Assembly (NCBI GenBank): GCA_964035545.1
Contig: CAXIUT010000310.1
Span: 1-23,122, forward strand
DNA: 23,122 nucleotides
Source: Bugula neritina
Lineage: Eukaryota; Animalia; Bryozoa
Reading direction: 5' to 3'
A model generated the notes under the pieces. The model was not told the origin of the DNA, did no database searches, and saw only the letters and a list, made by a program, of their open reading frames with translations. Each line of letters opens with the position of its first letter. Position 1 is the first letter of the stretch. The translations under genes and the position numbers were made by a program. Shown one piece after another: positions 472 to 22,995 of this stretch.

Positions 472-1539
472 TCATTCCCCAATTAATCCAATGGTTACAT
501 TTTGAAGCATTTTATTCATTTCTTAATCATTTTTAAGTGCTCTTTTTATTGATAAAGGAGTTATTCTTTTTTTACCGTCATTTATTGTATCATTTCCTGA
601 TATTTCTAACAATTAAGCAGCCAAATATTCAAGAGTTGCTCCCAAATATATCGCACTTCCAACTCCCACTCTTTGACCTACCATTACTTCTTTGAGCCTT
701 CTTTTTATTCTCCCAATTGGAAAAACTAGACCAGATCTTGAAGCTCTTGTCTTACCTGAGCCTATCGATGCTTTTGCCTTCCCTACTTTGGATAAAGTAG
801 TCTTATGAATAACAGGTTTTGAAGCTGATTTTTTGTTTTTAGAGGGAATACTTTAAAGTGAATGTGTTCTTGCGAGAGCTGTTTTAAGTTTCTTTTTTTC
901 CTTTTCATGAATTGGACGATGGATAGGAGCTGGAGGAGGGATAGGACTTTTATCAAAAAGACTATCTGGAATTCTAGATACAGCCTATACCATTGAAGAA
1001 TTATTAAACGCATCTTTTCCTATTTTATCTAAAGTATCAAGTATGCTCAAAGAAGGAAACATAGTAAAAACTTGTGCTCGATACCCAGGTACCTTTACCA
1101 CTTCATTGTTCAATAAATCTAATTGCAGAAGAGATCTCATATTTTTTAAAGGAACTAAATTTTAAAGTTTTTAAATTTTATTAGCTCCTATCATTAGTGT
1201 TTGGAGATGTCTTAATCCGCTTAAATATTTGACATGATCTCCTGGGATATTATTAAAAACCATGTCTAAACGAATCAAAGACAAGATTTGTGGAAAGTTT
1301 TATAGAGAAATAATTCCACAATCATTTAAGGTTAGCATCTGAAGATATCTATATCTTTCAAGTTACTGTTTTATTTCATCTGTAAAGTATCCACCAAAGC
1401 GGACAGAAACTATATCTATAACATAGACCATATGGGGAGGAACTCCTTCAGTCTGTTCTCTAATAGATCTGATAAGTTTACTTGCTTCATAATTTGCAGG
1501 AGGAACCACTCCATTACTTCCAGTTGCTGATCCAAACAT
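472..1539 (-). CDS. LRR (ANP32/U2A'/Sds22-type) - histone H2A fusion protein, H2A.Y-like, 355 aa, no intron
   Basis: With TAR=Glu: N-terminal LRRs ([59 protein letters not shown]) and LRR cap ([17 protein letters not shown]), a Pro/Lys linker, then an H2A fold ([19 protein letters not shown]...[23 protein letters not shown]...KKRITP...[15 protein letters not shown]). ATG at 1539, TGA at 472-474. Confidence 0.93.
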
Positions 1540-1706
1540 TTCTATTATTATATCTTTGACAAAAAAAGCACTAATAAAATATTCTTATGAAATCTATCAA
1601 AGAGAAAGGAGGTAAAATAAAATGATAAAATAAATAAAAGAAACCTTTAATATTTGATGTAGTACTAACAATAAAACAGATTTCTTCATTTTAAATATAA
1701 TGATAA

Positions 1707-2957
1707 ATGTAAAAGATAATCAGTTAAGTTCCATAGTTAGCTAGGTTTCTTTCTTCAATACCTAAAAATCAGCATAATGAAGCTCTTCAAGATCTTTTGC
1801 GTCTTGGACTCTCATGCACACGCTCATGTCACTGTAAATTAAATAACTTTATCCCATCAAATATGTTTAAATCATAACTTGATCAAATTTTACTCAATAT
1901 CTCAGAACTAAATCATCTAGTTAAATACCAAAAATATCATTATTAAATAAATGAGAATAATAATCCCCATAATGTTTGCTCTCAAAATTAACCCAAATAT
2001 AACGACTGTAATGATGAAATTACAATTAAAAATTAAAACAGAAATACCCAAAATAATACTATCATTGATTCTACATTGAAATAAACTTCTTAAAAAAGAA
2101 AAATTAAAGGATTTTTTGAAAAATAAATTGATGATAAAAAACATAAAGAAAATCATACTTTTTCATTAAAGAAAAAGTATGTTGCTACTCGTCATCATCT
2201 TGATGATACTGAAGCCAGAATGGCAATATAATTTCCACCAGATGCTTTTGTAAAACCAGATATCAAACTCAAACGGACTTCAAAAGAATTTAAAAAGCAT
2301 ATCTATCAATAATAGATTAACAGAGAAGAAATTGTAAAGCTAAAATAAGATCATAAAGGATCAAGTTAGGATAAATTGAGGTAAAAAAGAACAGTATCGG
2401 AATCCTGGAAGGCAACTAGCAAAATAAAGACTCTTCTTGACAAAGATCGTTTAAGACATGAGCAAAAGAAGAAAAACTTTTAGTTTTAAGAAGGTTATAA
2501 TAAATATGAGTATAGTGAAGAAAGCTAGATTAATTAAAGTAGTTTACGGGAAGATTCTGACCCTTAATAAACTGGTAACAACTAAACTTATCCAAAATTT
2601 GCTTCAAATAATGCTAATAGCTACAACATTTAGTCTAGTTTTAAAAATAGTAATCAAACCAATAGTAAAAAAAATTGTTTTTATTAAACTTCTTCCAAAA
2701 AGAATATTTAACAGCCTAAAAATGAAGCTAGAAGCAAATTAGAAGGACTACTTAGTTCAGATAAGTTTAGCAAAAATAGTTGCAAAGGTTAGAGTAATAA
2801 CTATTCCAATCATTATGGTTCTAAGGAAAGTAACATGCTATATGAATATGAAGAAGATGATGTGGTCAGTAACAGTTCAAGTTTTTCTCAGTTTTCTATA
2901 AATGGAAGTAAGAAAAAAGAAATCGGGAAAATAAATCGCAGAAGTCAAATAAACTGA
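1707..2957 (+). CDS. Hypothetical low-complexity N/E/K/S-rich protein, 416 aa
   Basis: 1251-nt frame with no internal TGA, from MEKIISEVPELARFLSSIPKNQHNEALQDLLRLGL to RRSQIN-TGA. No recognised domain. Confidence 0.7.
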
Positions 2958-3042
2958 ATGATTCTCTTAAATATTAAACTCTATTTCTTATCAAATTTAA
3001 GTTTGAAGATGGATATTAAAATAAAAGCATATAATAATGAAT

Positions 3043-5048
3043 TCAGTATTTGAAATTTTTTTGATTATTTCCAATTCTGCTTGTAGAAGCACTTCCTCGT
3101 AGTATAGATTGTGTTTTTTCCATTTTGAAAGTAGAAGAGCTTCGAACTAAACCAGTCTTTTGAGCTTATATTGGCTTATTTTCTTTATCTTAACGCCCAT
3201 CTCTTCTAAACCCATCTCTCATATTTTGCAATACTGATGCGATATATTTATGTCTTTTTTTGATCTAATCTGTCTGAGATTAAATTCCTTCTTTGCTAAA
3301 ACTAGTTCTCTCTCCAAACTTATTAACGTATGTTATTGAATCTTTTGAAAAAAGAAGTTCAGTATAATCCTGAAAAATAGTTTGATAATCTTTATTATTG
3401 AACCAGAATATAGTTGCTTTAGCTGTTTTAGCATGTTTCACCACCCAAGTATTCAAAGCATTTTCATTATTTTACTTTAGTCTCTGACGTTATTTCATTA
3501 TTATCTGTTCATTACTTAATCCTTTTTCATAACTCTCTTTTTTTATTTTCATCTATTTCTGGTAGTAGCTAATAATTTTGAACTTTTTCGTCAATTTTTG
3601 AGGAATAGATGATACATCAAAAACTTAAAAAGTTTTTTCTTATTCATTTTTTGCTAAAAAATCGATATACTTCATTTTCTGGAATTGACAGTTAGAAATA
3701 AGAGTAGTAGAATCGTTAAATCTCATTCCAGTTCCATTTGAACTCAATAAATAAGCAGTTCCAAATTTAGGATTTTCTTAAAAGAAAGTAATCCAAACAA
3801 GAGGTCCATTTTGAGACCTGACTTCGTTCGAACTTATTTTAACCACTTCTGTTTTAGTAGAAAGCATTCTTCCCCGAGTTAAAGCAGCTGTAGAAGCAGC
3901 TCTTTGTCCATAGTTGTTTTTACTTAATTGCTAAATACTATTAGTTCTGATTAAAATTCTAGCTGATTATCCTTTTTCAAGAATTTTTTGTCCAAATTGT
4001 GAATCATTACTCTACCTGTGTCGAAGATCTACAGAACATCCCAAATTATACTTATCTAGGAATATTTTATTGGGTGCACAAGCAAGAAGAGTTGTAGGTA
4101 AAATTTCAGGTATTGGAGAACTAAAAAATTAGTCGTTTAGAATTTCTTCAATGGTTAGGCGATGTTTAGGATCTTTTTGAAGAAGTTTTGAAATAAATTT
4201 TTTAGAAACTTTTTATAGATGTAAATGGTCAGGGAAAGAGTAATTGCACATCTTAATTTTGGCATATGTGGTTTTGATATCGTTTGTTTCAAAAGGAGGA
4301 CGACCAACCAGACAAGCATAGGCAATAACACCCAAACTCCAAATATCAACTTCATAAGAATGTCCTAAACTGTTATCTTCATTATTACATAAATACTCTA
4401 AATAATTTAAGGTGCAATATAGTTGGGAGTTCCACACATAGTTCTTCTTCTTTCTTGGTGATAGTTTAGCTTTGCAGCTAATCCAAAATCACTTATTCTG
4501 ATTTAAAGGCTATCAGTAAGAAGAAGATTTCCAAGTTTGAGGTCTCTATGAATGATCATTTGTTCTTGAAAATCTTTTACAGCCAAAGCCATTTGTCTTA
4601 AGTAGTATTTTGTTTCAATTTAACTAATTCTTTTTCTTCTTTTAATCAATTAGTTCAGAGTCTGGTTGGGACAAAGTTCAAGTAAAATATACACATTGAC
4701 TGAGTCTTCGAAATGTCTTTAGTACTTAACCACAAACTCTGATTTTACAGACTTATGAATCTCTATTTAAGAGGCAAGCTATCTATCTAAAATAGTACTT
4801 TTTATTTAGCCTTGCTTCGATTTAGGGTAGCTTTTTCAATAATTTTAGCTGCATACTTTCGACCTGTGCTGATATGAGTCAACTCATAACATTTAGCAAA
4901 TCCTCCCTGAGTTTGATTAAATATACTTTGCCAAGGTATCTTCCCTTGGAGTATTTATTGACTACAACTCCTTGCTTATTCTTTTCCTCTACTATATTTT
5001 ACCCTAAATTACTTAAAATATACCTTTTATTGATGTTCTATCTTCCAT
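3043..5048 (-). CDS. PLK: Polo-like kinase (kinase domain + two polo boxes), 641 aa, four 20-nt introns
   Basis: [61 protein letters not shown]; polo boxes VWIT...KFGTAYLLS...GMRFNDST and [14 protein letters not shown] introns at 5004-5023, 4907-4926, 4779-4798, 4377-4396; spliced length 1926 nt. Confidence 0.97.
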
Positions 5049-5244
5049 ATGAATTTAAGTCACTAACGATCAAATATCAATGAATTAATTTTAAAATATT
5101 AAATCATCATCTTTACTCTACTTTTATCAACTAGTAACTCCTTCCTCAAACCATAAAGAAATATAAAATTCAAAACTTTACTCATTCCAAATTAATTTGA
5201 GACTATCAGAGTTTAACATTAGATAATATATAAGGTTGCGAGCG

Positions 5245-5873
5245 ATGGGACAAGATGAACATAAACCTCCTCCCAAGAAGATGTCTCTGGAAGACAACAT
5301 AATAGAGATGAAGATCCAGTGTAAGCAGTTAGAAAGGGCTTCAAAAAAGGCAGAAAAGGAATCTCATAGCTATCAGAAGAAAGCCAAAGATGCCCTAAAA
5401 AAAAACAATGAAGAAGGTGCTAAGATGTATTTGATGAGCGCAGCAAACAAAAGAAATGAAGGTATCTTTTGATTAACAAAGCTTTATCAACTCAAAGAAC
5501 AGCTTTAAAGATGTAGTACATGTGCGGACAGATAAAATCAATGAAGAGCAACGAAGCAATGATAAATAATTTTTCAAATTTAGCTCAAATAGCTAATCAG
5601 CAGATGGGCAACGTTAACTTTTAGAATATGTCTAACCAGTTGGAAATGTTCAATAACAAGATGGACTAGATGATGATAAACAACAAGATGATGACCTAGG
5701 TGATGAGCACCCAGTAGGCAGGAACTGATAACGTGGTAGAAGATATGAAGAATGTCCTTCAACAAGAAATAGCTATGGAATAAAAGAATAAACTCATGGA
5801 AGAAGAAAAAGTTCACTATGAAAAAGAACAAGCCAACAATGATAAATTCATGGACTAACTAAGAGGACTATGA
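5245..5873 (+). CDS. CHMP1: ESCRT-III CHMP1/Did2/Vps46 (Snf7 family) protein, 202 aa
   Basis: [25 protein letters not shown]...[17 protein letters not shown] matches the CHMP1 N-terminus. One 20-nt intron at 5462-5481. MIM1-like C-terminus DKFMDELRGL-TGA. Confidence 0.9.
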
Positions 5874-5942
5874 TTATTCTCACCATCGATATTATCATGA
5901 TTCTCATCATCATCAATATTATCATTATTCTCATCATCGATA
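5873..5942 (+). repeat. Three degenerate 24-27 nt tandem units between the CHMP1 stop and the telomere tract
   Basis: ATTATTCTCACCATCGATATTATC / ATGATTCTCATCATCATCAATATTATC / ATTATTCTCATCATCGATA. Confidence 0.7.
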
Positions 5943-6011
5943 GGGGTTGGGGTTGGGGTTGGGGTTGGGGTTGGGGTTGGGGTTGGGGTTGGGGTTGGGG
6001 TTGGGGTTGGG
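5943..6011 (+). repeat. Internal telomere tract (GGGGTT)n, 69 nt
   Basis: Perfect G4T2 units ending TTGGG, followed directly by non-telomeric sequence. Confidence 0.98.
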
Positions 6012-6085
6012 AAACTAATTTTGATTTTAGATAAGCATATTTTGAATTTGTAATAGGTTATATTTGTATTAATAGTTGAGTTTAT

Positions 6086-6647
6086 TCAAAGTGATTGAGA
6101 TGAAGTGGCTAGACATTTTTCTTTTATTAGTTCCATTACTCTAGCTCTAGGTTTAGAATATTCGGCTAGTGTTATTTAATAACATAGCTTTTGATTGCTA
6201 TCTCTAAAACTTAAATCTGAATATCCTAACTATTAATTAATCTTTACGAGCTAACAGTAATATACTTTGCTCAAAGTTATCGGCCCTAGATACTTTCAAA
6301 CTATGCATCAAACTCGTATCTCCAGCATTATTTCTAGTATTTGCATTTATTGAACCTTACTTTAATAAATATTTCATCATCTTTATGTTTCCATACTCAC
6401 TACTAATATGAAGGCAACTACTACCACTCTAGTGCTATCGGTATTTACATATTCTATTATCCAATTATTTCGACAAATTATTTCCACCTCTAAATCTGCA
6501 AATATCGAATATATTTTATTCGACCAAACTTTATTCGATACTTTTCCGATCTATTTCTTTAATTTTTTTATTAGATCCAGCAATGTGACTAGCTTTAAGA
6601 TAAAAAAATTTATCAGAAAGACTCAATCTATCTAAAAAATTCTCCAT
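6086..6647 (-). CDS. Ankyrin-repeat protein, about 179 aa
   Basis: SGSSCLHISSEYGNIKMMKYLLKEGSINANTRNNAGDTSLMHS is an ankyrin consensus. A probable 22-nt intron at 6226-6247 gives LLARYSDLSFRDSNQKLCYEI and TGA at 6086-6088. The 3' end is less certain because the other two frames also stay open. Confidence 0.78.
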
Positions 6648-6731
6648 TTTTTTGAATATCTACTTTTTTTAATCTAATTTAATCATAATTAAATTTGCTA
6701 AGCATAACATTGAAAAAAAAAGTCATTTTTG

Positions 6732-7570
6732 TCAAAAATATCTGATTTTAATTATAAAATATTTTATCAATAAGGCAACCAATAAGATTGTCCTTTGTCT
6801 TTTGATTGCCTTGATAAATAACTTGAAATTAAGATTTTTTATCTCTATTGTCTTTTTATAGCCCAAATAGTACTTCAACTAAAGATTTTGATGGCTTGTA
6901 TTCCAATATCCTAAAGACTATCTCTCAACTTAAAAATGTTTCATACTTCTATTTTCTCTTGGTTTTTAAATGAAGAGAAAGATTGATAAAAACTATTTAA
7001 ACTTTATATTGAATTTGACCCTTGTAAGTTTTTTAAGATGCCACTTCAAATCTTTTGACTCATAACTTGAACTTTTATCATTATGAAAGAGATGATGACG
7101 TTTAAAATGTTTTTTCTTTTGTAATAATCTCTTCTTTTCAATCTTTCAATGTCTTAACAATTAGATAGAATTATTTTAGAAGAAACAAAAGGACGAGTCC
7201 CAATCTAATTTTTGAATTATTTTTATTTTGACTTCTATTTTGCATTTTACTTTGACTCAACACTATTTTTTATATTTATCTTTGATTTGAAGTTAGAAGA
7301 CCTAAATTTGGTTGACTAGCATTGGATAAAATATTTCCTTTCTATTTTTTATTCCTTCCTAAACATTCCTGTCGCTTTTTATCTTTATATCTTTTCATAT
7401 CTTACTTCTATTTTTTCACTTGCTCTAGAATTGACAAGTAATTGAGGTTTTTATTTAAACTTCTAGATATGCTAGTTTTCTTGTTTTATTTATCTTTCAA
7501 TTTTAGCTTAACTAGTTGAAATATAAGAAGCACTGCAAGATAATAAAAAAACACTAATTTTCAATGCCAT
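6732..7570 (-). CDS. Hypothetical K/E-rich protein with possible signal peptide; 3' end uncertain
   Basis: MALKISVFLLSCSASYISTS... is open to TGA 7046-7048 as written. A one-base change in the A-run near 7110 would extend it to TGA 6732-6734. Confidence 0.45.
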
Positions 7571-7731
7571 TTTTAAACAATTATTAATATATTAAATAAA
7601 ATTAGCTTAATAAAATATCTTATTAATTATATTCAAACACAAATATTATTTACAAATAAAATAATATAAAAAGATAATATTTGTGTCATAAATTTGATTA
7701 ATGTTATTTTTTTTCATAAATTATAATTGAA

Positions 7732-9093
7732 TCAAACTCTTTCCAAATCCTTATCATATAAGTCAACCAAACTTTTTCTACCAGAGTTTATATTTTCCTA
7801 TTTTATCACCTTCCTACTCGTAAGTTCATTCATCTTTCCCATCTTTTGTCCTTATAAAATTCCTCTGATCTTATTCTCAAAAGCTTTTTTACTTGTTTGA
7901 GAACGATTATCACTCAGAGTCGAATATCTTCCTCCCATTTCCTTTTCAGCTGCATCATAACCTATTTATTAAATTTTATTATTATGTCTAATACTCTGCT
8001 CGTGATGTTCTAAAATAGTTCTAATCTTTTCCCTATCATCATGCTTTATATAGGTTTATAAAGTTTTACGTAGACTAGCAACTTTTTTATTTTTGTTTAA
8101 AGCCAATGAATGTCTCACATTTGACCAAAGTTTGTGTTCATAGTTATCTAAAGACTATCTTTTAGAATAAATTTTAGAAAACATTCGGTCTCGCTCTGCT
8201 TATAAATACATTTATTGAGAGTTTTTAACTTTCTAATGTTTAGAATTCATTTTTTATTTCTCTTTCTTTTTTAAATACTCTATTAATTTTATTTTTCTAA
8301 CTTATTCAATCTCAACTGCTCCTTAAATATCTTTCTTATACCCTTGATCTTCAAAAGGGTTCGTCTTGTTTAATCTGTAAGCTCCTAACTTCTTCAATAA
8401 AGCTTTTTGTTTTGTTTATTTTAACAAAAGAGATGGATTTATTTTATAAACCTCTCTTTTTATTGTCTCTTTAAACTCCTTTTATTTCCATTTGTGCTCG
8501 TTCTAAAACCTATTTATTAATTTTTTAGTCTTATCTTGATATTTGCAGTCAAAATCCTGAAGAGTTTTGAGTTAGTTTTATCTGTGTTAATCAGATCTCT
8601 CTTCTTTCGATCTAGCCCAGTCTTCTTTTTTTTCTTTATAAACTTGCTAAAGTAAAAGTTCTTCATACTAAACTATTTTAGGAATAAACCATTCAATCAA
8701 CTTTCGATGTCTGTCAGCTATTTAAACTTTGACACAATCTGCGGCCTTAACTTTTCTTTCGTTGAGTTCTTCTAATAATTTTACAAGCAATCGAATTTGA
8801 CCTTCTTCTCCCATTTTATTATCTTCTCTTTCCACCAAAATATTCCATAAATCTTGAAAGTTGTTGACATTTAGGTAGTCTCTGAAAAGATCTTTATTTT
8901 CTGAGTGTATTATTTCAAAGTCTCTAGCCAAAAAAGCAGATCTCTTGCGAAGAACATTCTTCATCGAAATAAGTAAAGTCTAAATTCTTGACTAAGGGGT
9001 AATATTTGGAGTAAATTCGTTAATATCTGATGTCTAGGACTTAAAGAAATGATCAGGCTTAGTAGAAGGCAAGCTGGTCAGTATTTGTTTCAT
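7732..9093 (-). CDS. Hypothetical coiled-coil protein, 453 aa
   Basis: 1362-nt frame with no internal TGA, from MKQILTSLPSTKPDHFFKS to LVDLYDKDLERV-TGA. Contains ORF-track fragment 8722-8964. Confidence 0.8.
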
Positions 9094-9160
9094 TGTCTGA
9101 TAATAAAATTATCTACTTTGAACTTTAAACAGTGATGCTATAATTTAAATTGTATCAAAA

Positions 9161-10623
9161 ATGTCCATCCTATAGCACTAAGAGCTTACTGAAGCAGTTC
9201 TTGCTTATCTCAATGCTCACGACCTATCCAAAGTGTCTTAAAGCATTACTCAAGAAGTCAAAAGTATAATTTCTTCTATCAAGATAAGTATATGCATAAA
9301 AAGTTAAAGCCTTTCACCAAAGGAGTTGAAATCCCTCGTCTTTTAAGTCTAAAAAAGAGCAATGGGTCTTTGAGCCGTCGGGAAGTTAACCTTGATCGAT
9401 AGCTTAAAAACAACAGCAAAAAGTTTAGACAAATTATTCAATCATCTAAAAATGTATTTTCTGTGACTATTAACTTGATGCAAATGCTTGGAACATTTAA
9501 ATAAGCCAATAAACCTGAAATATCATAAATGATAGAAACCTACAAAATCCAACTGGCCAAGTACTTTAAAGTAGTTGAAAATTAAGGTAAACAATAAGGA
9601 GAAGAACCAACGGAAGTTGTATTTTTCTAACACAAAAACAAACTGGATCGCTTTGTTGCTGAAAAAAATGTTGATGGAATATGTTAAGTGCTTCTTAGCT
9701 TCAGAGTTAATGCCTTGCAGATAGCTCCTGAACTACGTAAAAATTTGGTGTATTAACTGATTCGCAACGACCTATTCAAAATTGAAGAGACTGAAAAGTT
9801 TGACTTCTTGCTCAGTTTACTTGAAAATAACTCTCCAAAACTGAGATATGCCATTATTCCTTTGGTCAGCATTGTCTGTAGCACTCTTCGAGGAGTTGAA
9901 TATCTTACTTTTCGCAAAAATATGGTTGTGATTGATCGAATTATCAAAGTACTTCTTCCTAATAAAGATTCTTAAAGAACAAGATCAAGGTTCAGTTATT
10001 CAACGCTTTTGTCTTGCTCTTCTTCAAAAATGTTCAGTGAAAGATACAGTTATTCCAGCTTTACTATAACATAATATGATAAACTGGTTAATGGACTTGA
10101 TAAAACTATCTCTAAATAAAAAGATTCATCATTTTTCTTTGGATTTCGGCTCTGCTTTACTGGCGAATATAATTCATGCTCCTTCGACTCTATCTTCTCT
10201 TGCTCAAGATCCTAAACTAGCTCAAATGGTACTTATATTCAAACTTAGTTGATGGAATCGATGCTAAAGCTCTTGAAAATGACTAATTTACAAGTATCAG
10301 TCCTCATGCACCTTTTGATTTGTCTTTCCTATCTTTCCAAAGAAGAATACTTTAAAGTTCAAAGATAAAACTGCGCATTTGTTTAAAAAATAAGTGAATT
10401 TGTTGAATACTACTCTCAAATCAATACTTCATAAAATGAAGCGGCATAAATTGATAAAAGAACAGTTTTAGACCTCTGTGCTCACATGTTTCATCCAAAA
10501 GACGTAGACCTCGACAACTCTGAGTCAATGGAGTATAATTAACTCAAAACCTAAGACAGAATCCGATAGTATGAAAATTAACAGGGATAACTCATATTTG
10601 AATGCTTCCAAGACTAAGTATGA
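9161..10623 (+). CDS. ARMC9: ARMC9-like LisH + armadillo ciliary protein, 467 aa, three introns
   Basis: LisH-like N-terminus (ELTEAVLAYLNAHDLSKVSESITQE), LIRNDLF, STLRGVEYL, SVIQRFCLALLQKCS, MINWL, FSLDFGSALLANI. Introns at 9264-9283, 9949-9967, 10229-10248; spliced length 1404 nt. Family call is from motif recall. Confidence 0.8.
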
Positions 10624-10796: not shown

Positions 10797-11990
10797 TCAT
10801 TATCCCAAAATAAAACTTCTCAACACAGGATCTTCGATTTCATTACTCTCAACTGGTCTCACGAAATGATCAGAAAAAAACTACCCTACAATATCGATTC
10901 CATCTTTAGTTAACCTTCCTAATCCATTCATACGATCAGCTCCCCACTGTCCTCGGTATTCTCCTCCTTACACCCAAAGATAATGACCTAAACCTTCTCT
11001 TTTGTCCTGATTAAACTAGCCAACATAAGTATCAGCCGTTGCCCATCGATATTTACCATGTCCATGTTTCATACCTTGATGAAAATTTCCTTCATATTGC
11101 TCCCCAATATCAAGAGTAAGGTTTCCTAATCCTTACTTGAGATCGTTTTTCCAAAATCCTTGATAAATATCTCCATTTTTATAGTAATAGACACCCTGAT
11201 AGCGAAGATTATCTTTAAAGCTTCCTTTGAATACATCTCCATTAAAGAGAGTCAGTTATCCCTAGACTTTAGCATCTCCTGTCCATAATCCTTCAAAGAC
11301 AGTACCTTCACTGAAATAGTAACTTCCTTTTCCTTCTTTTTTACCTTATATAAAATTGCCTACATATCTATCTTTGTTAACATACTAAAAACTTCCCTAT
11401 CCGTTGGGTAAATCCATCTAAAAATGTCCAGAATAAACACTTCCATCTGGAAATATTAATCTCCCTCGTCCATGTCTTCTATTTTTCATAAACTATCCCA
11501 CATAGGTTTCTTTGCTGACTTTGTTGTCGTGATAGCCACTTCCTGAATATTATCCCATACGCCATTCTCCTTCATAGATTTCTTCTTCACTGAAGTATAG
11601 ACCTTCTCCTTGTTTGAGTCCTTGTTGCCAATTTCCTTAATAGTAAGAATTTCCGTTGCCATAATAATAAATTCCTTTTCCTTCCATCTTTCCCTGTTGG
11701 ATCAGCCCATCAAATATCTCACCGTTAGAATGCATATAGACTCCTTGAATGTGGAACTCATCATCGTTCCAAGTACCAAAGTAAACATCTCCTTCTGGAT
11801 ATGTATAAATTCCCTTTCCTGTCCTCAATTGTTCACCAGATAGTTGTCCCAAATATATTCCACCATCAGGATATGTAACTTCTACTACATCAGAAATGCT
11901 CTGAAGTCTTTGGACAAACTAGTTCTTTCGTAAGTTGTAAGTCCTTAATACCTAGTTTTTTATTTGAGAAGGTTGCGTTCTGAAAGACAT
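10797..11990 (-). CDS. MORN-repeat protein, 397 aa
   Basis: More than ten Y-x-G-x-W/F...G-x-G units (GDVYFGTWNDDEFHIQG, NSYYEGNWQQGLKQGEG, EQYEGNFHQGMKHGHG). Single frame ending TAA-TGA. Confidence 0.95.
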
Positions 11991-12069
11991 AAAACTTATT
12001 CGATAAATTATAATAAAATCAATTAACATACAAATGTCTATAAAATAAACTATTCAAAGAACAAACGAT

Positions 12070-13320: not shown

Positions 13321-13462
13321 TTTTGACAGTTTATTTAAAAAGAGTGTTTGTTTGAAAGTAGAGAGGTAACTTTGAAGTCAAGTTTGATATCATGATTTGG
13401 ATAGGAATATTATAATTAGAAATAAGGTAATATTATGAATGTAAAATATATATTTAGACTAG

Positions 13463-14323
13463 TCAGACAGAAAATAGTGAAGGCATATCTCCGAGACAAT
13501 TTTTACTTCTTTTAGTATCTTTCAAAGTACCTTTAGATCTGATATGATCCAACTCTTTATTTCCTCCATTAAATAAAATTTAAGTTAACTTTTCCCTCAC
13601 ATTCTCTCCTGTGACATTTTTTCCACTGATCATGGGTACAGAAGACAATTTCTTGTTTTTATGTCCTACTCTATGAGATTGCATGCGCTCTCCTCTTTAC
13701 TCCCTGATGACTGTATTAACTTCTGTTCTAAAAAAACATTCCTGAGGTATTTTTTTCTTCTATTTGACTTACAAAGTATCTCCATTAAAGTCAGTTGTTG
13801 TTATTGTCCCTTTTTTTCTTTATAACTTAGGTTTAGATCGCTACTTTTTCTATGCATTTATAAAATAAGTCTACAATTCGTATAGTTTCTGTTTTTTTAT
13901 TCTATATGCCTCTATCTCTGAATCTTGCTCTTAAAACTATTTCAACTTCACAAAATGAGTATTCCTTGCAAAAGGTACATAGGAACATCTATCTTTTCCT
14001 CTAGTTATATTTTGACTTGATGTTTTCTTACTTCGAAAAAATCCAGAAGTTTTATTTGGAGTTGCTGAGTGTGAAAATGGAGGATATTTGTTGGGAGAAT
14101 TTGGAAAAGAAGGAGCAGGTGGTATGTCTTTAGGTTTAGACGAAGGTTCTAGGTCTAAGAAGTTAACAATATGGGAACAGCATTGAGTAGGATAGATACC
14201 AGCAGTTTTTCTACCTTAGTTGGTAAGAGCTAGATGTTTAAGATTATTGAGATGTAATTTAGTTGCTTTATGAACAATAAAATCAGTAGTTTCTTCTGAA
14301 ATTTGAGTCGAATGAGTAAGCAT
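13463..14323 (-). CDS. Hypothetical protein, 286 aa
   Basis: Open frame MLTHSTQISEETTDFIVHKA...Pro-rich...TTTDFNGDTLEVK...PSLFSV-TGA. Confidence 0.68.
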
Positions 14324-14485
14324 GCTTTCTATAATGGAAGTATTTATCACTGAAAGGTATTTATCACTAAAGGTATTTATTCTAAAAGAAAATAACAACA
14401 GATAATATTTAATGTTATTGATGTAAAGACTCTATTAATGAAGCTGTTTTGTTTAGAAATGAAAAGAATATCGATAATAATTTAA

Positions 14486-15457
14486 ATGAATAGAAGAGTT
14501 ATAGTTCCCATCATCTCAGTTCTCATTTACCTGATCATTTACGCCTTGATTCTGCTTCTAAAACCTCCTTCCACAGACTTCATCCACTAATTTCAACAAA
14601 ACATCGAAGAACCACTTTATCATTTAACCTCATCCCACCTTAATAACTATCCTATTGAACTATCTACTCCTCTTCCAAGCTGTCTATCGAAAAAACTACC
14701 AATAAAATCAACAGAACATTTACTCTGCTAAATCCAAACTTCTTTAGAAGTGATCTATAGAAGATAGACTAAATAGATCTATCATAGCGCATAGAATATC
14801 AAAAGTGAATAAATCAATCATTACTCTTGTTATAGATCTTTTGATGAAAAATAATGGAATAGTGTATTTTTTGTATTCGCTATTGTATCTAATTCGGTCA
14901 AATAAGCTATTCCTGCTTACCTTTAAACTTTTAATATCAATCAAACTATTAAGAAATCCATAATTGAAGGACATAATCAAACTATTAGTCACTTATTCAG
15001 TCTACAAAAAACTATTATGGCCACTGATCTCTCATACTATCTAAAAAAATTAAGAATAGTTAAAAATAAGGTTGAGTTCATTCAAAAATATCAAATTCTC
15101 ACTCAAAATATAATTAATAATAGCAGTCAAAATGATAAAGGTTTGATGATCGAGAAAACTATAGCTTTAGAACATTCACTGAACATATCATTTGGACTAT
15201 AATAATCAATTTAAGACAGTTTTGAAGAACAAATAAGATTACTTTATCAACTATCGAAAACAATAAAAAAATATTACGACAACCAAGCACAAGAATAACC
15301 GATTCACATGCAATCGAAACTAGATCTAGGATAGTTTTTTTACTTCTTATTAGGAACAGGTGTAGTCATGATGTATATTCTTTGCCAAATAAATCCTCAT
15401 AAAAAGTCACGTTCTCTCTTCAAACACACACTTCCTCACAAATTTAAACTGCAATGA
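14486..15457 (+). CDS. Hypothetical membrane protein with N- and C-terminal hydrophobic helices, 323 aa
   Basis: MNRRVIVPIISVLIYLIIYALILLLK...FFYFLLGTGVVMMYILC...KFKLQ-TGA; 972-nt open frame. Confidence 0.78.
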
Positions 15458-15600
15458 TTGCAATATCAAACCCTTATAATATCACTTATAAATTCTAACT
15501 TTATCATCAAATTATAAGCCCTTTTTAATCTAATACCAGTATTGATTTATATAAATAGATTATTTAAATAGTCAAATTAATAATCTAATAAGGCGGCCAA

Positions 15601-16131
15601 ATGAGTTAATCTAGATAGTCAGACTGGGTAAAGGTCAAAACAACTCGAATTCCAGTTGATATATCCGAGACATCAAAAGGAGTCAAAGGCACTATCATCG
15701 ATCTACCTAGAACCTACCCTACAGATTTCAAACCAAGTGACATCAACATGAGGTAAGTCAAAACTAAAATTTAAGATAAAGAACACTACCTTGTTCGTAA
15801 AAATTAACTCAACAACTTTAAATAAATAACCTAAAAACACATATAAATCATATCAAAAAAGTTCCCTGAAAGCAAATTCTCAACTACTGTACCTTTCAAC
15901 TTCAACTAATCATAATATCTCTACTTTGCTATCAAAAAAGAACAAAACAAAGTCAAAATCAACCTCCTCGATGGCCTCCTCAAAGCTAAATAGTGGACTT
16001 AAAATAAAAAAACTCCTCTCTCCACTAAACAAAGAATTAAATACAATGAACTACTCGCAGATGCCAGAAGAAAAATCACAGAAGAAGACATTCTCGAAAT
16101 GTACGACTAAAATGGGTAATCCTACGAATGA
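15601..16131 (+). CDS. Hypothetical protein, 176 aa
   Basis: MSESRESDWVKVKTTRIPVDIS...ILEMYDENGESYE-TGA; 531-nt open frame with coding-like purine bias. Confidence 0.75.
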
Positions 16132-16140
16132 TACTCGCAT

Positions 16141-16236
16141 CTTATCATAAATAATCTAATTGACCTTGTCATAAATAATCTAATTGACCTTGTCATAAAT
16201 AATCTAATTGACCTTGTCATAAATAATCTAATTGAC
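16141..16236 (+). repeat. 24-nt minisatellite x4 between convergent 3' ends
   Basis: CTT(G/A)TCATAAATAATCTAATTGAC at 16141, 16165, 16189, 16213, plus a partial copy near 16245. Confidence 0.92.
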
Positions 16237-16366
16237 ACTCTCACCTTATCATAAATATATCTCATTTAGTCTCTTACACACAAATAGCACCTTACACGTA
16301 GTCATTGATATCAGAATGGTTTTAAGAAATAGAACTTGATAGGGTAAGATGTTGGATAAATGTTAA

Positions 16367-17404
16367 TCATTTGCAGTTTTTGAACTCTTGGCAACGCTCT
16401 ACTAGTCCTCCAGCTGATGTTTTGATAGCTTTTCCAGTGGCATCTGAAGGATATTGCCAATGAGCAATACCAGCGTACCATTTATGTTAATCATAGGCCT
16501 TGTTAGCATATTTTCCTAAATCTTCCATACTGATCCAACCTGTGTTAGAAGCATCAGAAGTCAATATAGGTTTAGCAACTACTATCTTCTTTAGAGGAAC
16601 TCCTCGTTTGTTCACTTCCATTACAGATGTCCCATTGAATACAGAACCAGTAGCATGAGTAAACAACTCTTAATAACTATCATATTTAGAGTCAACTTGG
16701 TTATAAAATTGCAAACTGTAGAAGTTGATCAAGTCTCCAACCTTGTCGTTAATAGTTTTATAACCTCCATTGGGGTAATATTAGTTTTTGAAGTAAGGAG
16801 CCTGAGGGCAATGACTTACAATATGATAGGGAATAACTTCTCTGAGAGCTTTAGTAAAATCGATGAGCCAAGCCTAACCTGTTCCTTTGCTCATAGCACT
16901 ATTGTCTTCCCAATCAATGTCAGCTCCATCAAGGTTGTTTTCAAGAACATATTGACCAAGAGCTCTACCACAGCGAACAGGATCTGAACCAGCTGAAGTA
17001 GGAAATTAACTATCTCCAAAAGCACTCACCATGATCTTGATATTGTGAGCATTGTATATCTTCTTAATAGCCTTTTGAATAGATTGAGTATCATTTCCAA
17101 AGGAATTTCCTTGGGCAAAATATGTATAAGCATTGGCCCAAACCATTGCTATATCTTTAGGAGCTCCAGAACAACTCCAAAATGCCAATAAAATATAGTT
17201 ATAATCATGAGGAGGAGCATACCCTGGAACTCCTAAAGCCTCAGCAATACTATCTCCATACCATGACTTGATTCGGTCAATATAAGCCAGTCTAATTGGG
17301 TAGTTGTTTTTGGACAAGGTAGGAGTTTTATCTTTTAACCGACGGTTAATGAAGAAAGCCTGCATGCTGAAAACAAGCACCAACAGCAACACTACTCTCA
17401 ACAT
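16367..17404 (-). CDS. Secreted GH18 chitinase, 345 aa, no intron
   Basis: Signal peptide MLRVVLLLVLVFSMQA; YNYILLAFW; KIMVSAFG; catalytic NNLDGADIDWED (DxxDxDxE); SHCPQAPYF; FYSLQFYNQ; KIVVAKP; WYAGIAHWQY. Confidence 0.95.
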
Positions 17405-17545
17405 AACTTTATTGGTATGATTATTTATCAAAAATTAAAGCTTATCTCCTTATTACGCCTTATTAAATCATCCTCTTTTAAAAATTACTTCTCTATCATA
17501 TCAAAAATAAGACAAAAATATTTTAAACATTCAAATAACAAAAGA

Positions 17546-17679
17546 CATCATCTCAAAAGCAACTGGCACATCATCTCAAAAGCAACTGATACAAATAATC
17601 TCAAAAAGTCAACTGATACAAATCATCTCAAAAAGTCAACTGATACAAATCATCTCAAAAAGTCAATTGGTACACATCA
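17546..17679 (+). repeat. About five 23-27 nt tandem units overlapping the stop codon of the TLDc gene
   Basis: ATCATCTCAAAAAGTCAACTGATACAA-type units. On the minus strand they re-encode ...TTG ACT TTT TGA. Confidence 0.85.
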
Positions 17680-20600
17680 TATTCTTCTAGTTCAAATTTT
17701 TCGTTTTTGAACAGTTTTTTTATTTTTCCAGTTGAAGATTAATAACTACAAGGAAAACAACTACTATTGACTACTGCTCCATCAGATATAACCAAATCTC
17801 CATCTCCAATCATAGGACCTTCCACCCAACTGACTCCAGCAGCTCGATCTCCATTTTTTAACCTACAAAACTCACTTTCCTGAGGACTAAATAAAAAGCT
17901 CAGCTTCCTGGAATCCTTCACATAGCCTCCAAACACTCCATTACACTTGCTCATGTCAAAACCTTCCTCATTATAGAAATATATTTTCTTTTTCTCTTTT
18001 TTTTCCATAATAACCAACAGCAATTGCCTTCTATCCAAAAGACTCTCATAAAAGCACCTAGAACTGAACTTACTGTGACTTCCTCTAAAAATAGGTAGTA
18101 TTTTTTTAACTGTTCTATTTTGATGAGTTTTGAAATAATCACCTATCTTCTTCTTATGTTCAGTACTAATCAATTCTTCACTGTGACTTCCTCTAAAAAT
18201 AGGTAGTATTTTTTTAACTGTTCTATTTTGATGAGTTTTGAAATAATCACCTATCTTCTTCTTATGTTCAGTACTCATCAATTCTTCACTACCCTTCAAG
18301 TCTAGTATAAACTATACTCCATTCTTTTTTTTCTTTTTATAAATATTTTATCTTTGCTTACAAAAGTGTCTACCTGTTGAAAGTCTAATTGACTTCTGTC
18401 TGGATTTGTTTTAAATCTTTAAGCATGTCTTTGAGTTGTTTTCTTTCAGACGGAACTAAATTCAAACCTTTTGCTAGTTCATTTAAAGATAATTTACAAT
18501 ATCTTTTATAATCGACCATTTTGTCCTATGAAACGATCTTGAATTACTTGGATTTATCTTCATCCATGTTCTCAAGCTACATTATTTATTTTCTAAATTA
18601 TTTGCCAGTCAATGATCCAAAAACAAACAAACTCACCTTCCAAATATCATTTAATCGAACATCCTTTAAAAAATAAAGACTTAAAAATAAATTAAGGAGA
18701 AACATATCGAAGAGAACGACCTACTAAAGCTGACTTCTTCAATCGATTGCTTTCTTTTTTCTTTATTTACTCCAAATCTTCTTCTTAGGTTTCTCTCCAG
18801 TGCTTGAACCAATGACCAGCTACTTTAGCTCTTTCTTTTTGCATAAATAATATTTAATCAACATTATGAGGAAAAAAAAGCCATTTGATGTTAATGAAGA
18901 ACAGATACAGCTTTCACCAATTATATTGACAACTTTACTCTTCTAATAAAATCTTATTTAGTTTTAATTTAGCCTTCTAATTGATTTTTATCAAATCTAG
19001 CTAATTCTCCTTCTGCCAGTAGCTGTAATAAAACTTACTTCCCAGCTTTTAAGGTTGGTTTACCTTATTGGATTTTGTTTTATCCTTATTTCCTAGCCTA
19101 TTATTTTATTTTGATAAAAACACCCAAATAACCCATAACTAAACATAAATTGATTTTAGATATTTTATTTATGCTTTTCATCATCTTTGCTTTTTACTCT
19201 TCGATTATCTCCTTTTTGTTCTATACAACTATACTTTCTATCACAGTTAAATTAACTCTAACATCCTCTCCTGAACCGAATATCTCTCTCTTTGAACCTT
19301 TGTCCTACTTCTATTATTGTTATTATTTTTATTATTGTTATTTTAGAATAGTCCTATTTTATTTTTATGATAGAACTTTTTTCTAAATATCAGATGATTA
19401 TTATCGAATAGGTAATATAATATTTTATTGAGTTTATTGATTATTTTTTTTAAAAATTTGTGATTTATTGAACTTATTCTATTTTCCTTTATGGTTTAAT
19501 TTCAATTTAAGAAGTAGCTATTTGACCAGCAATTTCCTTCTTGTTCTTTTGAACTTATTCTATTTTCCTTTATGGTTTAATTTCAATTTAAGAAGTAGCT
19601 ATTTGACCAGCAATTTCCTTCTTGTTCTTTTGAACTTATTCTATTTTCCTTTATGGTTTAATTTCAATTTAAGAAGTAGCTATTTGACCAGCAATTTCCT
19701 TCTTGTTCTTTTGAACTTATTCTATTTTCCTTTATGGTTTAATTTCAATTTAAGAAGTAGCTATTTGACCAGCAATTTCCTTCTTGTTCTTTTGAACTTA
19801 TTCTATTTTCCTTTATGGTTTAATTTCAATTTAAGAAGTAGCTATTTGACCAGCAATTTCCTTCTTGTTCTTTTGAACTTATTCTATTTTCCTTTATGGT
19901 TTAATTTCAATTTAAGAAGTAGCTATTTGACCAGCAATTTCCTTCTTGTTCTTTTGAACTTATTCTATTTTCCTTTATGGTTTAATTTCAATTTAAGAAG
20001 TAGCTATTTGACCAGCAATTTCCTTCTTGTTCTTTTGAACTTATTCTATTTTCCTTTATGGTTTAATTTCAATTTAAGAAGTAGCTATTTGACCAGCAAT
20101 TTCCTTCTTGTTCTTTTGAACTTATTCTATTTTCCTTTATGGTTTAATTTCAATTTAAGAAGTAGCTATTTGACCAGCAATTTCCTTCTTGTTCTTTTGA
20201 ACTTATTCTATTTTCCTTTATGGTTTAATTTCAATTTAAGAAGTAGCTATTTGACCAGCAATTTCCTTCTTGTTCTTTTGAACTTATTCTATTTTCCTTT
20301 ATGGTTTAATTTCAATTTAAGAAGTAGCTATTTGACCAGCAATTTCCTTCTTGTTCTTTTGAACTTATTCTATTTTCCTTTATGGTTTAATTTCAATTTA
20401 AGAAGTAGCTATTTGACCAGCAATTTCCTTCTTGTTCTTTTGAACTTATTCTATTTTCCTTTATGGTTTAATTTCAATTTAAGAAGTAGCTATTTGACCA
20501 GCAATTTCCTTCTTGTTCTTTTTGAACTTATTCTATTTTCCTTTATGGTTTAATTTCAATTTAAGAAGTAGCTATTTGACCAGCAATTTCCTTCTTGTTC

Positions 20601-21001
20601 TTTTGAACTTATTCTATTTTCCTTTATGGTTTAATTTCAATTTAAGAAGTAGCTATTTGACCAGCAATTTCCTTCTTGTTCTTTTGAACTTATTCTATTT
20701 TCCTTTATGGTTTAATTTCAATTTAAGAAGTAGCTATTTGACCAGCAATTTCCTTCTTGTTCTTTTGAACTTATTCTATTTTCCTTTAAGAAATAGCTCT
20801 CTAATTGCTAACTTAATTCTTATGTTATAGACCAGTTTTATTTTATGGAGTTATTATTTATTGATTATTTTAGACAATACTTTGAACAATATTGTCAGGA
20901 GGAATTGAAGTCTTTTCTATCAGAGTTTATTCTTGTGAAGATGGAGTAAGTGGTATTTATGATTGTGACTGTTTCTTCAATTGATTCAATTGATTAATCA
21001 T
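17655..21001 (-). CDS. Multidomain protein: 27-aa repeat array + pseudokinase + coiled coil + TLDc, about 1113 aa after five +1 frame corrections
   Basis: ATG at 21001 (MINQLNQLKKQ); 16 x QKNKKEIAGQIATSEIEIKPERKIEEV; kinase-like RVKLSIELVKAVSVLHEHQMAFFPHNVDEILF, AKVAGHW, GRSLRYVSPE, NDIWK; TLDc IFRGSHSKFSSRCFYE, SFLFS, GPMIGDGDLVISD, FELEEYDVYQL-TGA. 3347-5=3342 nt is divisible by 3. Confidence 0.7.
18072..18290 (-). repeat. In-frame 108-nt tandem duplication at the start of the TLDc domain
   Basis: SEEL(M/I)STEHKKKIGDYFKTHQNRTVKKILPIFRGSH occurs twice, nearly identical at DNA level. Confidence 0.95.
19468..20787 (-). repeat. 81-nt coding tandem repeat, 16 full copies plus a partial copy
   Basis: Identical units start every 81 nt from 19468. 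The only variant seen is one extra T at about 20521. Confidence 0.98.
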
Positions 21002-21116
21002 CTATTAAAACTATTTATATATGATAACTAATGAGATAAAGTAGGTAACCCATTTTAAGAAATTATTTATCAGTTATTTCAGAATGTTTAACTTTTAGTA
21101 TTTAATGATATACATA

Positions 21117-21699
21117 TCATTTTATATTATGCTTATTTTCTGAGGCTAGAACTCCAATCATAAAAGTAGCAAAAGTACCAAAAGTACTAAAAACAAATAA
21201 ATAAAATAGACAAATGTTATTTTTACCTGCACATTTTCCAATCCACATACAATGATGGTCAAAAACCCCTTATACAAACATCACATTGCTGACAATGTCT
21301 TGAGTCGATAGGTCGATATCCATTACATTTAGGACACAGCTTCTCATTGCTCTCTACGTTTCCTTCAGAAAGAAGAGTTTTGTTTTTAGGAATAATGCCA
21401 GGATTAGAAAATCCAACCATCATATAGCTCATCATAAATATAATTATGCCAACTAAAATCACTACTTTCCATGAGTGAAAGAGTCTGTCTTGGGATCTAA
21501 TGAATAAAAAGACAAATAAAAAAGATAAGAAGAGAAATCCGCAAAAGAAAACAGCATCTTTGATAAGATTAGAGTTACAGTGAGGACCAAGAGTGCAGAT
21601 AGGCTGATCATTGCAAATAAATATACCTTTATTAGCTCCATACTAGGAAAAAGTCTCTTCTTTTTGCTATTATTGTTCAAGACTCTGTTCATTATTCAT
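21117..21699 (-). CDS. DHHC palmitoyltransferase, about 186 aa, with one apparent +1 frameshift
   Basis: [16 protein letters not shown], probable 21-nt intron at 21558-21578, two TM helices, [48 protein letters not shown], then a TM helix. An extra base at 21261-21269 splits GF from DHHC. Confidence 0.88.
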
Positions 21700-21844
21700 A
21701 GATGTTATATTTTGTTTTGATTATTAAGACTCTGTTCATTATTCATAGATGTTATCAAAGATCTAGATGTGATTAACATTATTCATAGATATTATATTTG
21801 TTATGATTAAAAATTGAAAGACTTCTTTAGATTGTATCATCAAA

Positions 21845-21925
21845 GGGGTTGGGGTTGGGGTTGGGGTTGGGGTTGGGGTTGGGGTTGGGGTTGGGGTTGG
21901 GGTTGGGGTTGGGGTTGGGGTTGGG
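21845..21925 (+). repeat. Internal telomere tract (GGGGTT)n, 81 nt
   Basis: Perfect G4T2 units ending TTGGG, followed by unique sequence. Confidence 0.98.
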
Positions 21926-22043
21926 ATTTGTCTTTCAAAATTAAAAACATGACTAAAATCTTATTCATCTCTATATACTAATTTACTAAAACCTTTTGAT
22001 TATTAAAATGAATTGAAATGTTCTTGTCTTTAGCAATCACCTT

Positions 22044-22213
22044 AACTCTTCAACTATTACAACCACAACTTGAACTCTTCAACTACTACAATCTCTTTCA
22101 ACACTTCAACTACTACAATCTCTTTCAACACTTCAACTACTACAATCACTTTCAACTCTTCAACTACTACAATCACTTTCAACACTTCAACTATTACAAC
22201 CACAACTTGAACT
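22044..22213 (+). repeat. 27/30-nt minisatellite, about six units
   Basis: CTTCAACTACTACAATC(T/A)CTTTCAAC(A/T) x4, flanked on both sides by CTTCAACTATTACAACCACAACTTGAACT. Confidence 0.9.
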
Positions 22214-22296
22214 AGAAACAATCAATAGTTGACATAGATAATTAAGGTTTAATAAAATTTGATAAAATAATAGAGAATTAATCAAGAAATATAGCA

Positions 22297-22995
22297 TCAT
22301 TTCTTTATAGAAGTACGAGTATATTTCTTTTTGGGAGAAGAACTATCTCTTTTCTTTTTCTATTGTTTGTTATATTTATCTTCAAGTAGAGATCCTTAGG
22401 TTGATATTGTTATCTTTGAACTTTCTTAGACCAGCTATTCATCGCCTGCTTTCTCTCTATCCTTTGATTGCTTTGAAAAACTATTTATTTTACTATCTTC
22501 TGGATTTTTTTAATCCCTCTCTTCAATATCAATTGGCATAGTTGTTTCTTTTATAGTCTAATTTTTGAAGTTATGATATTTATTCTTTTATGTATTGAAT
22601 GATATTCTTTTTAGTTTGTTTTTATTTCTATTTTTATTGTAAGTTTCATTGACTTGTATATTTTTGACTGTATTATTGATAGTTGTTTCCATCAATTCTT
22701 TATCTTTCTATGAAAAACCTTTGATGAACTCTTGGTGACTATATTGATACTTACGATTAACTCTTTCTTAGAGAGATAGTTTGCGACGATATTGCAGAAA
22801 GGTAAGCTGCAAAATCTTTAGGACTACTAAAAGGTAAATCATAAATTTAATAAACAAAAGAACTTGGTTACCCAAATCGAGGATTATTGTATTCCAACAG
22901 TATTCTGAAGAGTGGTGATTTATAGTATGAGTTACCATTATGGTAAATAATATAATTAATTTAAACTATTAAAACTATCTAAACTACTTCTTCAT
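22297..22995 (-). CDS. Hypothetical membrane-anchored protein, 232 aa
   Basis: 699-nt frame with no internal TGA: MKKEFREFEEFKLIILF...VLLFIKFMIYLLVVLKILQLTFL...K/E/N-rich tail...TSIKK-TGA. Confidence 0.6.

Follow-up and report, generated by a model that had tools for sequence, protein, structure and literature searches.

TAA and TAG break every gene in the window, the whole 23,122-nucleotide stretch of DNA analysed here, when it is translated with the standard code, raising the question of what these two codons mean and which codon ends translation. A sequence-only reading had proposed that both specify glutamate, the latter less firmly than the former, and that TGA is the sole stop. We examined seven genes on this one chromosome, counting codons within frames and pairing them, codon by codon, with orthologues from related uncultured species, taken from bog and lake metagenomes.

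A complete macronuclear chromosome

The window carries a (CCCCAA)n telomere at its left end (1–80, forward strand) and a (GGGGTT)n telomere at its right end (23026–23122, forward strand). With C4A2 telomeres at both termini, it is therefore an entire 23-kb ciliate somatic (macronuclear) chromosome. An internal (GGGGTT)12 tract lies between two genes (5943–6012, forward strand), and a Logan contig of 15 kb from run X1 contains the internal G4T2 tract (5934–6018). Tracts resembling it were also seen at 21845–21926 and, as a short stretch in C4A2 orientation, at 378–393. Runs X3–X5 represent the same species as the window, with 0 or 1 difference per contig; given a single well-supported SNP, divergence between these runs was dropped as a source of substitution patterns. 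Neither rRNA nor eRF1 was found in the window or the fetched related loci, and tRNA and Rfam scans came back empty, with no tRNA gene in the window or in 14 related loci. None of the window's open frames is on record in named protein collections, and a literature search for the accession numbers of the related contigs gave no paper.

Codon counts on this chromosome need frames joined across GTA...AG introns of 19–32 nt. A TAG in the open frame of the kinase gene (DR*LAS, upstream of LAS*IEIH), not among the sites cited by the sequence-only reading, falls within a 20-nt intron (4779–4798) and is non-coding, so exon joining must precede codon counting. Protein and domain searches used stop-free pieces, and read-through translations with X at TAA and TAG were handled in scripts.

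At 472–1539 on the reverse strand lies a gene fusing LRR and histone H2A (ATG 1539–1537, stop TGA 472–474), recognised by a PDB match to H2A and a hint of LRR_9, with in-frame TAA at 523, 613, 853, 1162, 1171, 1300, and 1363 and TAG at 985; full-length orthologues with 64%–72% identity and the same terminal TGA occur in loci L001, L011, L019, and L020. The poorly conserved gene G2 (1707–2957, forward strand) begins M-TAA-K-I-I-S and has 21 TAA and 7 TAG in its open frame, which are kept or exchanged with GAR in the blocks conserved with its orthologue in L019 (43% identity, 413 codons). A Polo-like kinase (PLK) with a kinase domain and two polo boxes (3043–5048, reverse strand; ATG 5048, stop TGA 3043–3045) is interrupted by introns at 5004–5023, 4907–4926, and 4779–4798 (20 nt each) and 4365–4396 (32 nt). 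Its three tallied 3' exons hold 18 TAA and 5 TAG, with an extra TAA (4998–5000) in an untallied upstream exon, and its identity is based on Pfam Pkinase and POLO_box matches on pieces, PDB PLK1, orthologues in L019 and L020, and a paralogue in L016.

Downstream, a CHMP1/Did2-like ESCRT-III gene (5245–5873, forward strand; 20-nt intron 5462–5481, stop TGA 5871–5873), whose putative family name comes from the motif match of the sequence-only reading and a weak PspA_IM30 match, has 2 TAA and 5 TAG in exon 2 and orthologues with the same terminal TGA in L001 and L019. G9 (9193–10623, forward strand), a gene without assigned function, changes frame because of introns of 19 nt (9949–9967) and 20 nt (10229–10248). 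A MORN1-like protein with roughly 15 MORN repeats (10797–11990, reverse strand; stop TGA 10797–10799; 7 TAA, 9 TAG), assigned by Pfam MORN and PDB MORN1, has an orthologue in L015 (60% identity, 405 codons) that terminates with TGA TGA TGA. An exhaustive protein search with a 93-residue MORN piece was set aside, its best matches being long multi-repeat proteins and only P0039, a piece from a relative, being useful; a word search with a coiled-coil piece (8725–8979) gave no match. The remaining genes are a secreted-looking protein with a DGADIDWE motif, putatively GH18 (16367–17404, reverse strand; open frame with stop TGA 16367–16369, 4 TAA, and 1 TAG), for which no relative was found, and a DHHC palmitoyltransferase gene with a +1 frame break (21117–21735, reverse strand; Pfam DHHC).

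UAA and UAG at glutamate positions

Across 1,915 confirmed codons in five genes, 38 TAA and 21 TAG stand in frame, making up about 3% of positions in intact, conserved genes. All positions cited by the sequence-only reading proved to be in-frame TAA or TAG of the gene it had named. In the kinase, the TAA at 4407–4409 follows CGTPNYIAP, the alignment to human PLK1 in PDB stopping at that P, at the glutamate of the APE motif where relatives have GAG, GAG, and TAG; the αC TAA in LAS*IEIH (4767–4769) is opposite GAA in three of three relatives. In H2A, the TAA at 613–615 follows LEYLAA, where the alignment ends at residue 60 of 129–130-residue chains and relatives have TAA, GAA, and GAA, and the TAA of ND*E (523–525) is opposite GAG, GAG, and GAA. 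TAA in the window thus occupies Glu61 and Glu91 of H2A and the APE and α-C glutamates of the kinase, and relatives have TAG of their own at H2A Glu56, Glu64, and Glu92, positions that are GAR in the window.

The other three sites cited are likewise in frame. The MORN TAA in YY*GNW (11637–11639) is opposite GAT (Asp) in the single relative, and the CHMP1 TAG (5622–5624) is opposite GAG in the closest relative and GCA in another. For the gene with the TAG at 16874–16876, Pfam and PDB searches on pieces did not confirm the GH18 label, yielding only an EndoS TIM barrel (E = 0.13).

The wider comparison covered 3,735 codon pairs from L001, L011, L015, L016, L019, and L020. TAA in the window (33 sites, 88 comparisons) was opposite GAA or GAG 43 times, TAA 16, TAG 9, Asp 8, Gln once, and Lys never; TAG (20 sites, 36 comparisons) was opposite GAA or GAG 20 times, TAG 5, TAA 5, and neither Gln nor Lys. 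GAR partners occurred at 14 of the 20 TAG sites, the partners at the other six being just TAR or, at variable positions, non-Glu residues, and TAA and TAG replaced one another in 14 comparisons between window and relatives. Controls paired as expected (CAA/CAG with Q, AAA with K, GAT with D). Among these related species, TAA and TAG interchange with GAA, GAG, and each other like synonymous codons, and counting TAR as Glu raises glutamate content from 4.9% to 8.0%. Using a substitution table from the same alignments and one relative per site, log10 likelihoods for Glu, Asp, and Gln were −9.9, −20.9, and −26.1 for TAG (18 sites) and −14.8, −30.4, and −48.2 for TAA (31 sites). Glutamate is thereby favored over the next-best residue, aspartate, by about 10^11 for TAG and 10^15.6 for TAA, and over glutamine by 10^16 and 10^33, respectively. 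As TAG is found opposite Glu and never opposite Gln or Lys, the doubt that had attached to it is settled in favor of glutamate.

We conclude with high confidence that the organism reads UAA and UAG as glutamate and UGA as stop, in agreement with NCBI table 30, the nuclear code of peritrichs. Judging from other ciliates, decoding of TAR would fall to glutamate-charged tRNAs with the anticodons UUA and CUA, probably descended from tRNA-Glu, and termination would rely on an eRF1 recognising UGA alone.

UGA as stop, and a frame break in the DHHC gene

No TGA occurs in frame among the 1,915 window codons or in the orthologues, compared with 114 in the other two frames of the same stretches. All five tallied genes end at TGA, as had been proposed; in all, six genes end at TGA where their orthologues do, the LRR-H2A, PLK, CHMP1, MORN, and G2 frames sharing this end with their relatives to within three codons. 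UGA is missing inside frames, and every gene with a C-terminus anchored by orthologues terminates at it. In CHMP1, a TAA four codons ahead of the stop does not end the frame: the conserved LRGL of the C-terminus comes after it.

The exception is the DHHC gene, the frame of which runs into a TGA at 21259–21261 and resumes in the +1 frame (GGT TTT T|GAC), with no fitting GT..AG intron at the break; a second TGA (21117–21119) follows AAA 47 codons downstream of the first. With UGA as a plain stop, the gene can be read only if one base in the sequence is wrong, and the +1 shift at TTT-TGA-C may reflect either a miscounted homopolymer or genuine frameshifting. It is conceivable, yet unlikely, that UAR encodes glutamate here while UGA is not a plain stop, being used internally for +1 ribosomal frameshifting as in Euplotes or as a sense codon, with termination dependent on context. 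This would account for a shift needed exactly at TTT TGA C and for the second TGA, which interrupts a protein expected to reach a fourth membrane helix. Against it stand the clean frames of the confirmed genes and their orthologues, and the position of the break within a G4T5 homopolymer, in which a single wrong base would produce the same pattern. Moreover, two sampled 31-letter words of 21235–21294 are absent from all listed runs, including X1 and X2, which hold 97%–99% of the words of a 5.9-kb stretch (3000–8900), hinting at a mismatch between the window and the short reads near the break.

A search for DHHC orthologues with a 127-residue piece returned no relative. A 47-residue core (two-row alignment) retrieved 51 loci, all paralogues or distant homologues and none an orthologue in which conservation of the +1 break could be followed; these loci read through in one frame, L035 changing frame via a 25-nt intron. 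Scanning blindly for pairs of frames that meet at a TGA gave too noisy a result, because stops at TGA alone leave all frames long. Programmed +1 frameshifting reportedly occurs in Euplotes at AAA-UAA/UAG, in work attributed to Lobanov et al. in 2017. The DHHC gene resembles that system in that the organism's stop comes directly after a homopolymer codon and the frame continues at +1, and differs in being a single candidate site, possibly a sequence error, at which the stop would be UGA. If true, +1 shifting at UGA would make the organism part of a second ciliate lineage in which, independently of Euplotes, ribosomes shift frame at stop codons.

Other readings of UAA and UAG

Besides glutamate for both codons, a split code would assign TAA and TAG to separate residues, the situation in Oligohymenophorea sp. 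PL0344, or leave TAG with a meaning other than glutamate. Such codes are known in ciliates (PMC10553269, PMC11687900), and the window has fewer TAG than TAA sites; nonetheless, the lack of Lys in all 88 TAA comparisons, the GAR partners of TAG, the 14 swaps between the two codons, and the lead of Glu for both by more than 10 orders of magnitude make this very improbable. Glutamine for both codons (table 6) is less probable still. This is the commonest ciliate variant and the inferred ancestral state of Oligohymenophorea (PMC10553269), and glutamine does meet TAR at a few variable sites, with CAR in the window's H2A tail opposite TAG in two relatives and one window TAA opposite CAA in the distant paralogue L016. 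Set against the codon pairs, where Gln accounts for 1 of 88 TAA and 0 of 36 TAG partners, the likelihoods, and TAA at invariant glutamates of the kinase and H2A, a table 6 reading of the window is refuted. The outcome that would have overturned the original proposal, mostly Gln or a TAG unlike TAA, was not seen. That the codons are true stops of decayed pseudogenes or sequencing errors, for which there speaks only the breakage of every gene under standard translation, is refuted and of negligible probability, as 59 TAA and TAG stand in five genes with otherwise intact frames 60%–80% identical to orthologues in which such codons also occur, often at identical sites, and the sole well-supported difference between samples is synonymous (CCT>CCA).

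Lineage and comparison with known codes

The ciliates named as having UAR = Glu are the peritrichs (PMC11687900), and this reassignment is inferred to have a single origin, in Peritrichia (PMC10553269). Most likely the organism belongs to the peritrichs, or if not, to the same UAR=Glu lineage; it may instead lie outside Peritrichia, so that UAR=Glu would have two origins. Several of its uncultured relatives, bog and lake ciliates, appear to share the code. The code being textbook knowledge already described for peritrichs, the finding is correct and not new, and adds an instance rather than a principle. Its practical consequence is that annotation of this genome needs table 30 and exon joining across 19–32-nt introns, since a standard or bacterial code splits every gene into short pieces, as public gene callers have recorded the relatives. 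Fetching such short open-frame pieces from metagenomes and counting the codons that replace TAA and TAG also offers a cheap reading of a variant code from one small contig.

Table 6 ciliates (Tetrahymena, Paramecium, and Oxytricha) have reassigned this pair of codons too and likewise stop at UGA alone, with Gln in place of the window's Glu. Condylostoma and karyorelicts use codes without a dedicated stop; the confirmed genes here, the DHHC site apart, do not have all three stop codons in frame. Oligohymenophorea sp. PL0344 reads UAA as Lys and UAG as Glu (PMC10553269), sharing UAG = Glu and UGA as the only stop and differing in UAA, which is Glu in the window and never opposite Lys. Table 30 agrees in all three codon meanings, with the caveat for UGA of the DHHC break at TTT TGA C, and shows no difference in code; compatible with it as well are the AT-rich, oligohymenophorean-style genome, the G4T2 telomeres, and the tiny introns, which vary little in length, a narrow range of this kind having been reported for three peritrich genomes (PMC13685798).

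A ciliate chromosome, its genes and introns

Telomere repeats at both ends of the window ((CCCCAA)n at 1-80 on the left, (GGGGTT)n at 23026-23122 on the right) identify its 23.1 kb as a full ciliate macronuclear chromosome. Its G+C content is 30%, and translation with TGA as the only stop gives long open frames on both strands. On the minus strand these frames hold a fusion of leucine-rich repeats and histone H2A (LRR-H2A; 475-1539), a polo-like kinase (PLK; 3046-5048), a MORN1-like repeat protein (10800-11990) and a DHHC palmitoyltransferase (about 21120-21735), and on the plus strand a CHMP1-like ESCRT-III gene (5245-5870); several further genes have no assigned family. Searches of Pfam and PDB with stop-free pieces backed the H2A, kinase and polo box, MORN and DHHC calls, and gave no confirmation of the "GH18" label that the sequence-only reading had placed on 16370-17404, for which a DGADIDWE motif is the sole basis. 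The LRR part of the fusion is ANP32/LRR_9-like and its H2A is divergent; the fusion is conserved over its full length in four related species (contigs L001, L011, L019 and L020). We take it to resemble Tetrahymena H2A.Y, a likeness for which our literature search found no paper.

Frame changes within the window genes occur at short GTA...AG introns, five of the seven being exactly 20 nt long (kinase, 5004-5023, 4907-4926 and 4779-4798; CHMP1, 5462-5481; and 10229-10248 in G9, a gene without an assigned family) and the remaining two 19 nt (G9, 9949-9967) and 32 nt (kinase, 4365-4396). Codon counts must allow for them, as the TAG just upstream of LAS*IEIH lies within the 4779-4798 intron and is noncoding. 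At 19393-20919 (minus), near-identical units repeat in a long tandem array that is open in two frames simultaneously, one reading KNKKEIAGQIATS-TAA-IEIKP-TAA-RKIE-TAA-VQ and the other RTRRKLLVK-TAG-LLLKLKLNHKGK-TAG-NKFK.

Telomere-type repeats also occur at intergenic positions, as (GGGGTT)12 (5943-6012) and (GGGGTT)13-14 (21845-21926) in right-telomere orientation, and as a short (CCCCAA) tract (378-393) in left-telomere orientation. The 5943-6012 tract is contained within a 15-kb Logan contig of sequencing run X1; in runs X3-X5, depth is near zero immediately to its right (6000-6400), as though a shorter chromosome consisting of 1-6012 existed alongside the full-length one. An ankyrin-like gene (5937-6722, minus) has an open frame that crosses this tract as (Pro-Asn)n and then meets TGA TGA. 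Reads mapped to the window show the same species in three studies with almost no differences, the one well-supported SNP (4096, CCT>CCA) being synonymous in the kinase frame.

TAA and TAG encode glutamate

Across the 1,915 codons of five genes with frames fixed by homology, we counted 38 TAA, 21 TAG and no TGA, confirming that TAA and TAG lie in frame; TGA occurs 114 times in the other two frames of this DNA. All TAA and TAG coordinates of the sequence-only reading hold. The TAA at 4407-4409 directly follows CGTPNYIAP, and the human PLK1 alignment stops one residue before the APE glutamate; that at 613-615 directly follows LEYLAA, and H2A alignments stop at residue 60, the next residue of H2A being Glu61 of the acidic patch. 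Counting TAA and TAG (together TAR) as Glu raises Glu content from 4.9% to 8.0%.

Homologues were sought with stop-free gene pieces as bait. The H2A piece matched two short metagenome proteins and the kinase piece 26, and an exhaustive search with the MORN piece gave one useful match (P0039, a protein piece from a related species). These proteins are fragments of the corresponding genes of related species, split at their own TAA and TAG codons by standard gene callers. We retrieved the contigs encoding them (L001-L010 from peat and bog, L011-L014 from lake, L015, L016-L018, L019 and L020-L021); L019 is the closest relative and carries PLK, LRR-H2A, CHMP1 and the poorly conserved gene G2 (1707-2957, plus) together, as in the window. 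All frames were translated with X at TAA and TAG and aligned by BLASTP, and each aligned column was mapped back to its codon pair, yielding 3,735 pairs at 44-91% identity by gene segment and relative.

Window TAA codons (33 sites, 88 comparisons) were paired with Glu codons 43 times, TAA 16, TAG 9, Asp 8, Gln once, Lys never and others 11 times. For TAG (20 sites, 36 comparisons), which had been held less firm than TAA, the partners were Glu codons 20 times, TAG and TAA 5 each, and A, D, T, S, I and N once each, with neither Gln nor Lys among the 36. At least one relative carries GAA or GAG at 24 of the 33 TAA sites and 14 of the 20 TAG sites. In the reverse view, relatives' TAA met window Glu 26, TAR 21, Asp 6 and Gln 3 times, and relatives' TAG met Glu 20, TAR 14, Asp 4 and Gln 3 times; control pairs behaved as expected (CAA/CAG with Gln, AAA/AAG with Lys, GAT/GAC with Asp). 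When each of the 20 amino acids was scored with a substitution table from the same alignments and one relative per site, Glu was best for both TAA (log10 likelihood -14.8, against -30.4 for Asp and -48.2 for Gln) and TAG (-9.9, against -20.9 and -26.1), and the procedure recovered the correct residue for the controls GAA, GAG, CAA, CAG, AAA and GAT. TAA, TAG and Glu codons interchange at invariant alignment positions, as in H2A LEYL(T/A)AELLEI (with x for TAA and z for TAG, window E..x..E, L011 z..x..z, L001 E..E..x), and likewise within the conserved blocks of G2. Both TAA and TAG are thus glutamate codons in the window, and TGA is the stop.

The same UAR=Glu code is used by at least four or five uncultured relatives at species level (peat-bog and lake; L001-L021, from JGI, ENA and Logan contigs). 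They also share part of the gene order (PLK, CHMP1, LRR-H2A), and in public gene calls their genes appear only as fragments of 30-170 residues.

TGA as the stop codon

All five counted genes end at TGA, as had been claimed. For LRR-H2A, PLK, CHMP1, MORN and G2, the aligned end of the open frame in every relative falls within three codons of that in the window, and the terminator is always TGA (three in a row in L015). In CHMP1, conserved C-terminal residues follow a TAA that lies four codons ahead of the stop, so TAA is sense even near the 3' end, which speaks against context-dependent termination there. The spacer between CHMP1 and the telomeric tract (5872-5942) is TGA-rich in several frames of the minus strand, with ATGATGA-type repeats, in keeping with TGA as the sole terminator.

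The zinc-finger frame of the DHHC gene meets TGA (21259-21261, minus) and its sequel lies immediately in the +1 frame (GGT TTT T|GAC), a +1 shift at GGT TTT TGA C being needed to reach the DHHC motif; no GT..AG intron fits the break. Either one base is in error in the homopolymer G4T5 run or ribosomes really shift to +1 here, at the only stop codon. An error finds some support in two sampled 31-letter words of 21235-21294, neither of which was found in any listed run, X1 and X2 included, and these two runs contain 97-99% of the words of positions 3000-8900 elsewhere in the window. The +1 frame is closed by another TGA, which follows AAA (21117-21119), ahead of the expected fourth membrane helix. 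An orthologue to test the break was sought among 51 fetched DHHC loci and none was found; all are paralogues, which read through in a single frame or, in L035, change frame via a 25-nt intron.

Comparison with known codes

As Lys is never the partner of window TAA, the code of Oligohymenophorea sp. PL0344 (UAA=Lys, UAG=Glu) is excluded. Table 6 (UAR=Gln) is likewise excluded for the window, Gln being the partner in 1/88 TAA and 0/36 TAG comparisons. Decoding would involve Glu-charged tRNAs carrying the anticodons UUA and CUA, and an eRF1 that has lost recognition of UAA and UAG; no tRNA genes were found in the window or 14 related loci. The interpretation of UAR as Glu with UGA as stop, TAG included, is supported, and the code itself is already known: it is cited as the peritrich code (PMC11687900), and a UAR=Gln ancestor is inferred to have given rise to it once, in Peritrichia (PMC10553269). 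All three codon meanings are the same in the window, and its 19-32-nt introns agree with the narrow intron length range in three published peritrich genomes (PMC13685798).
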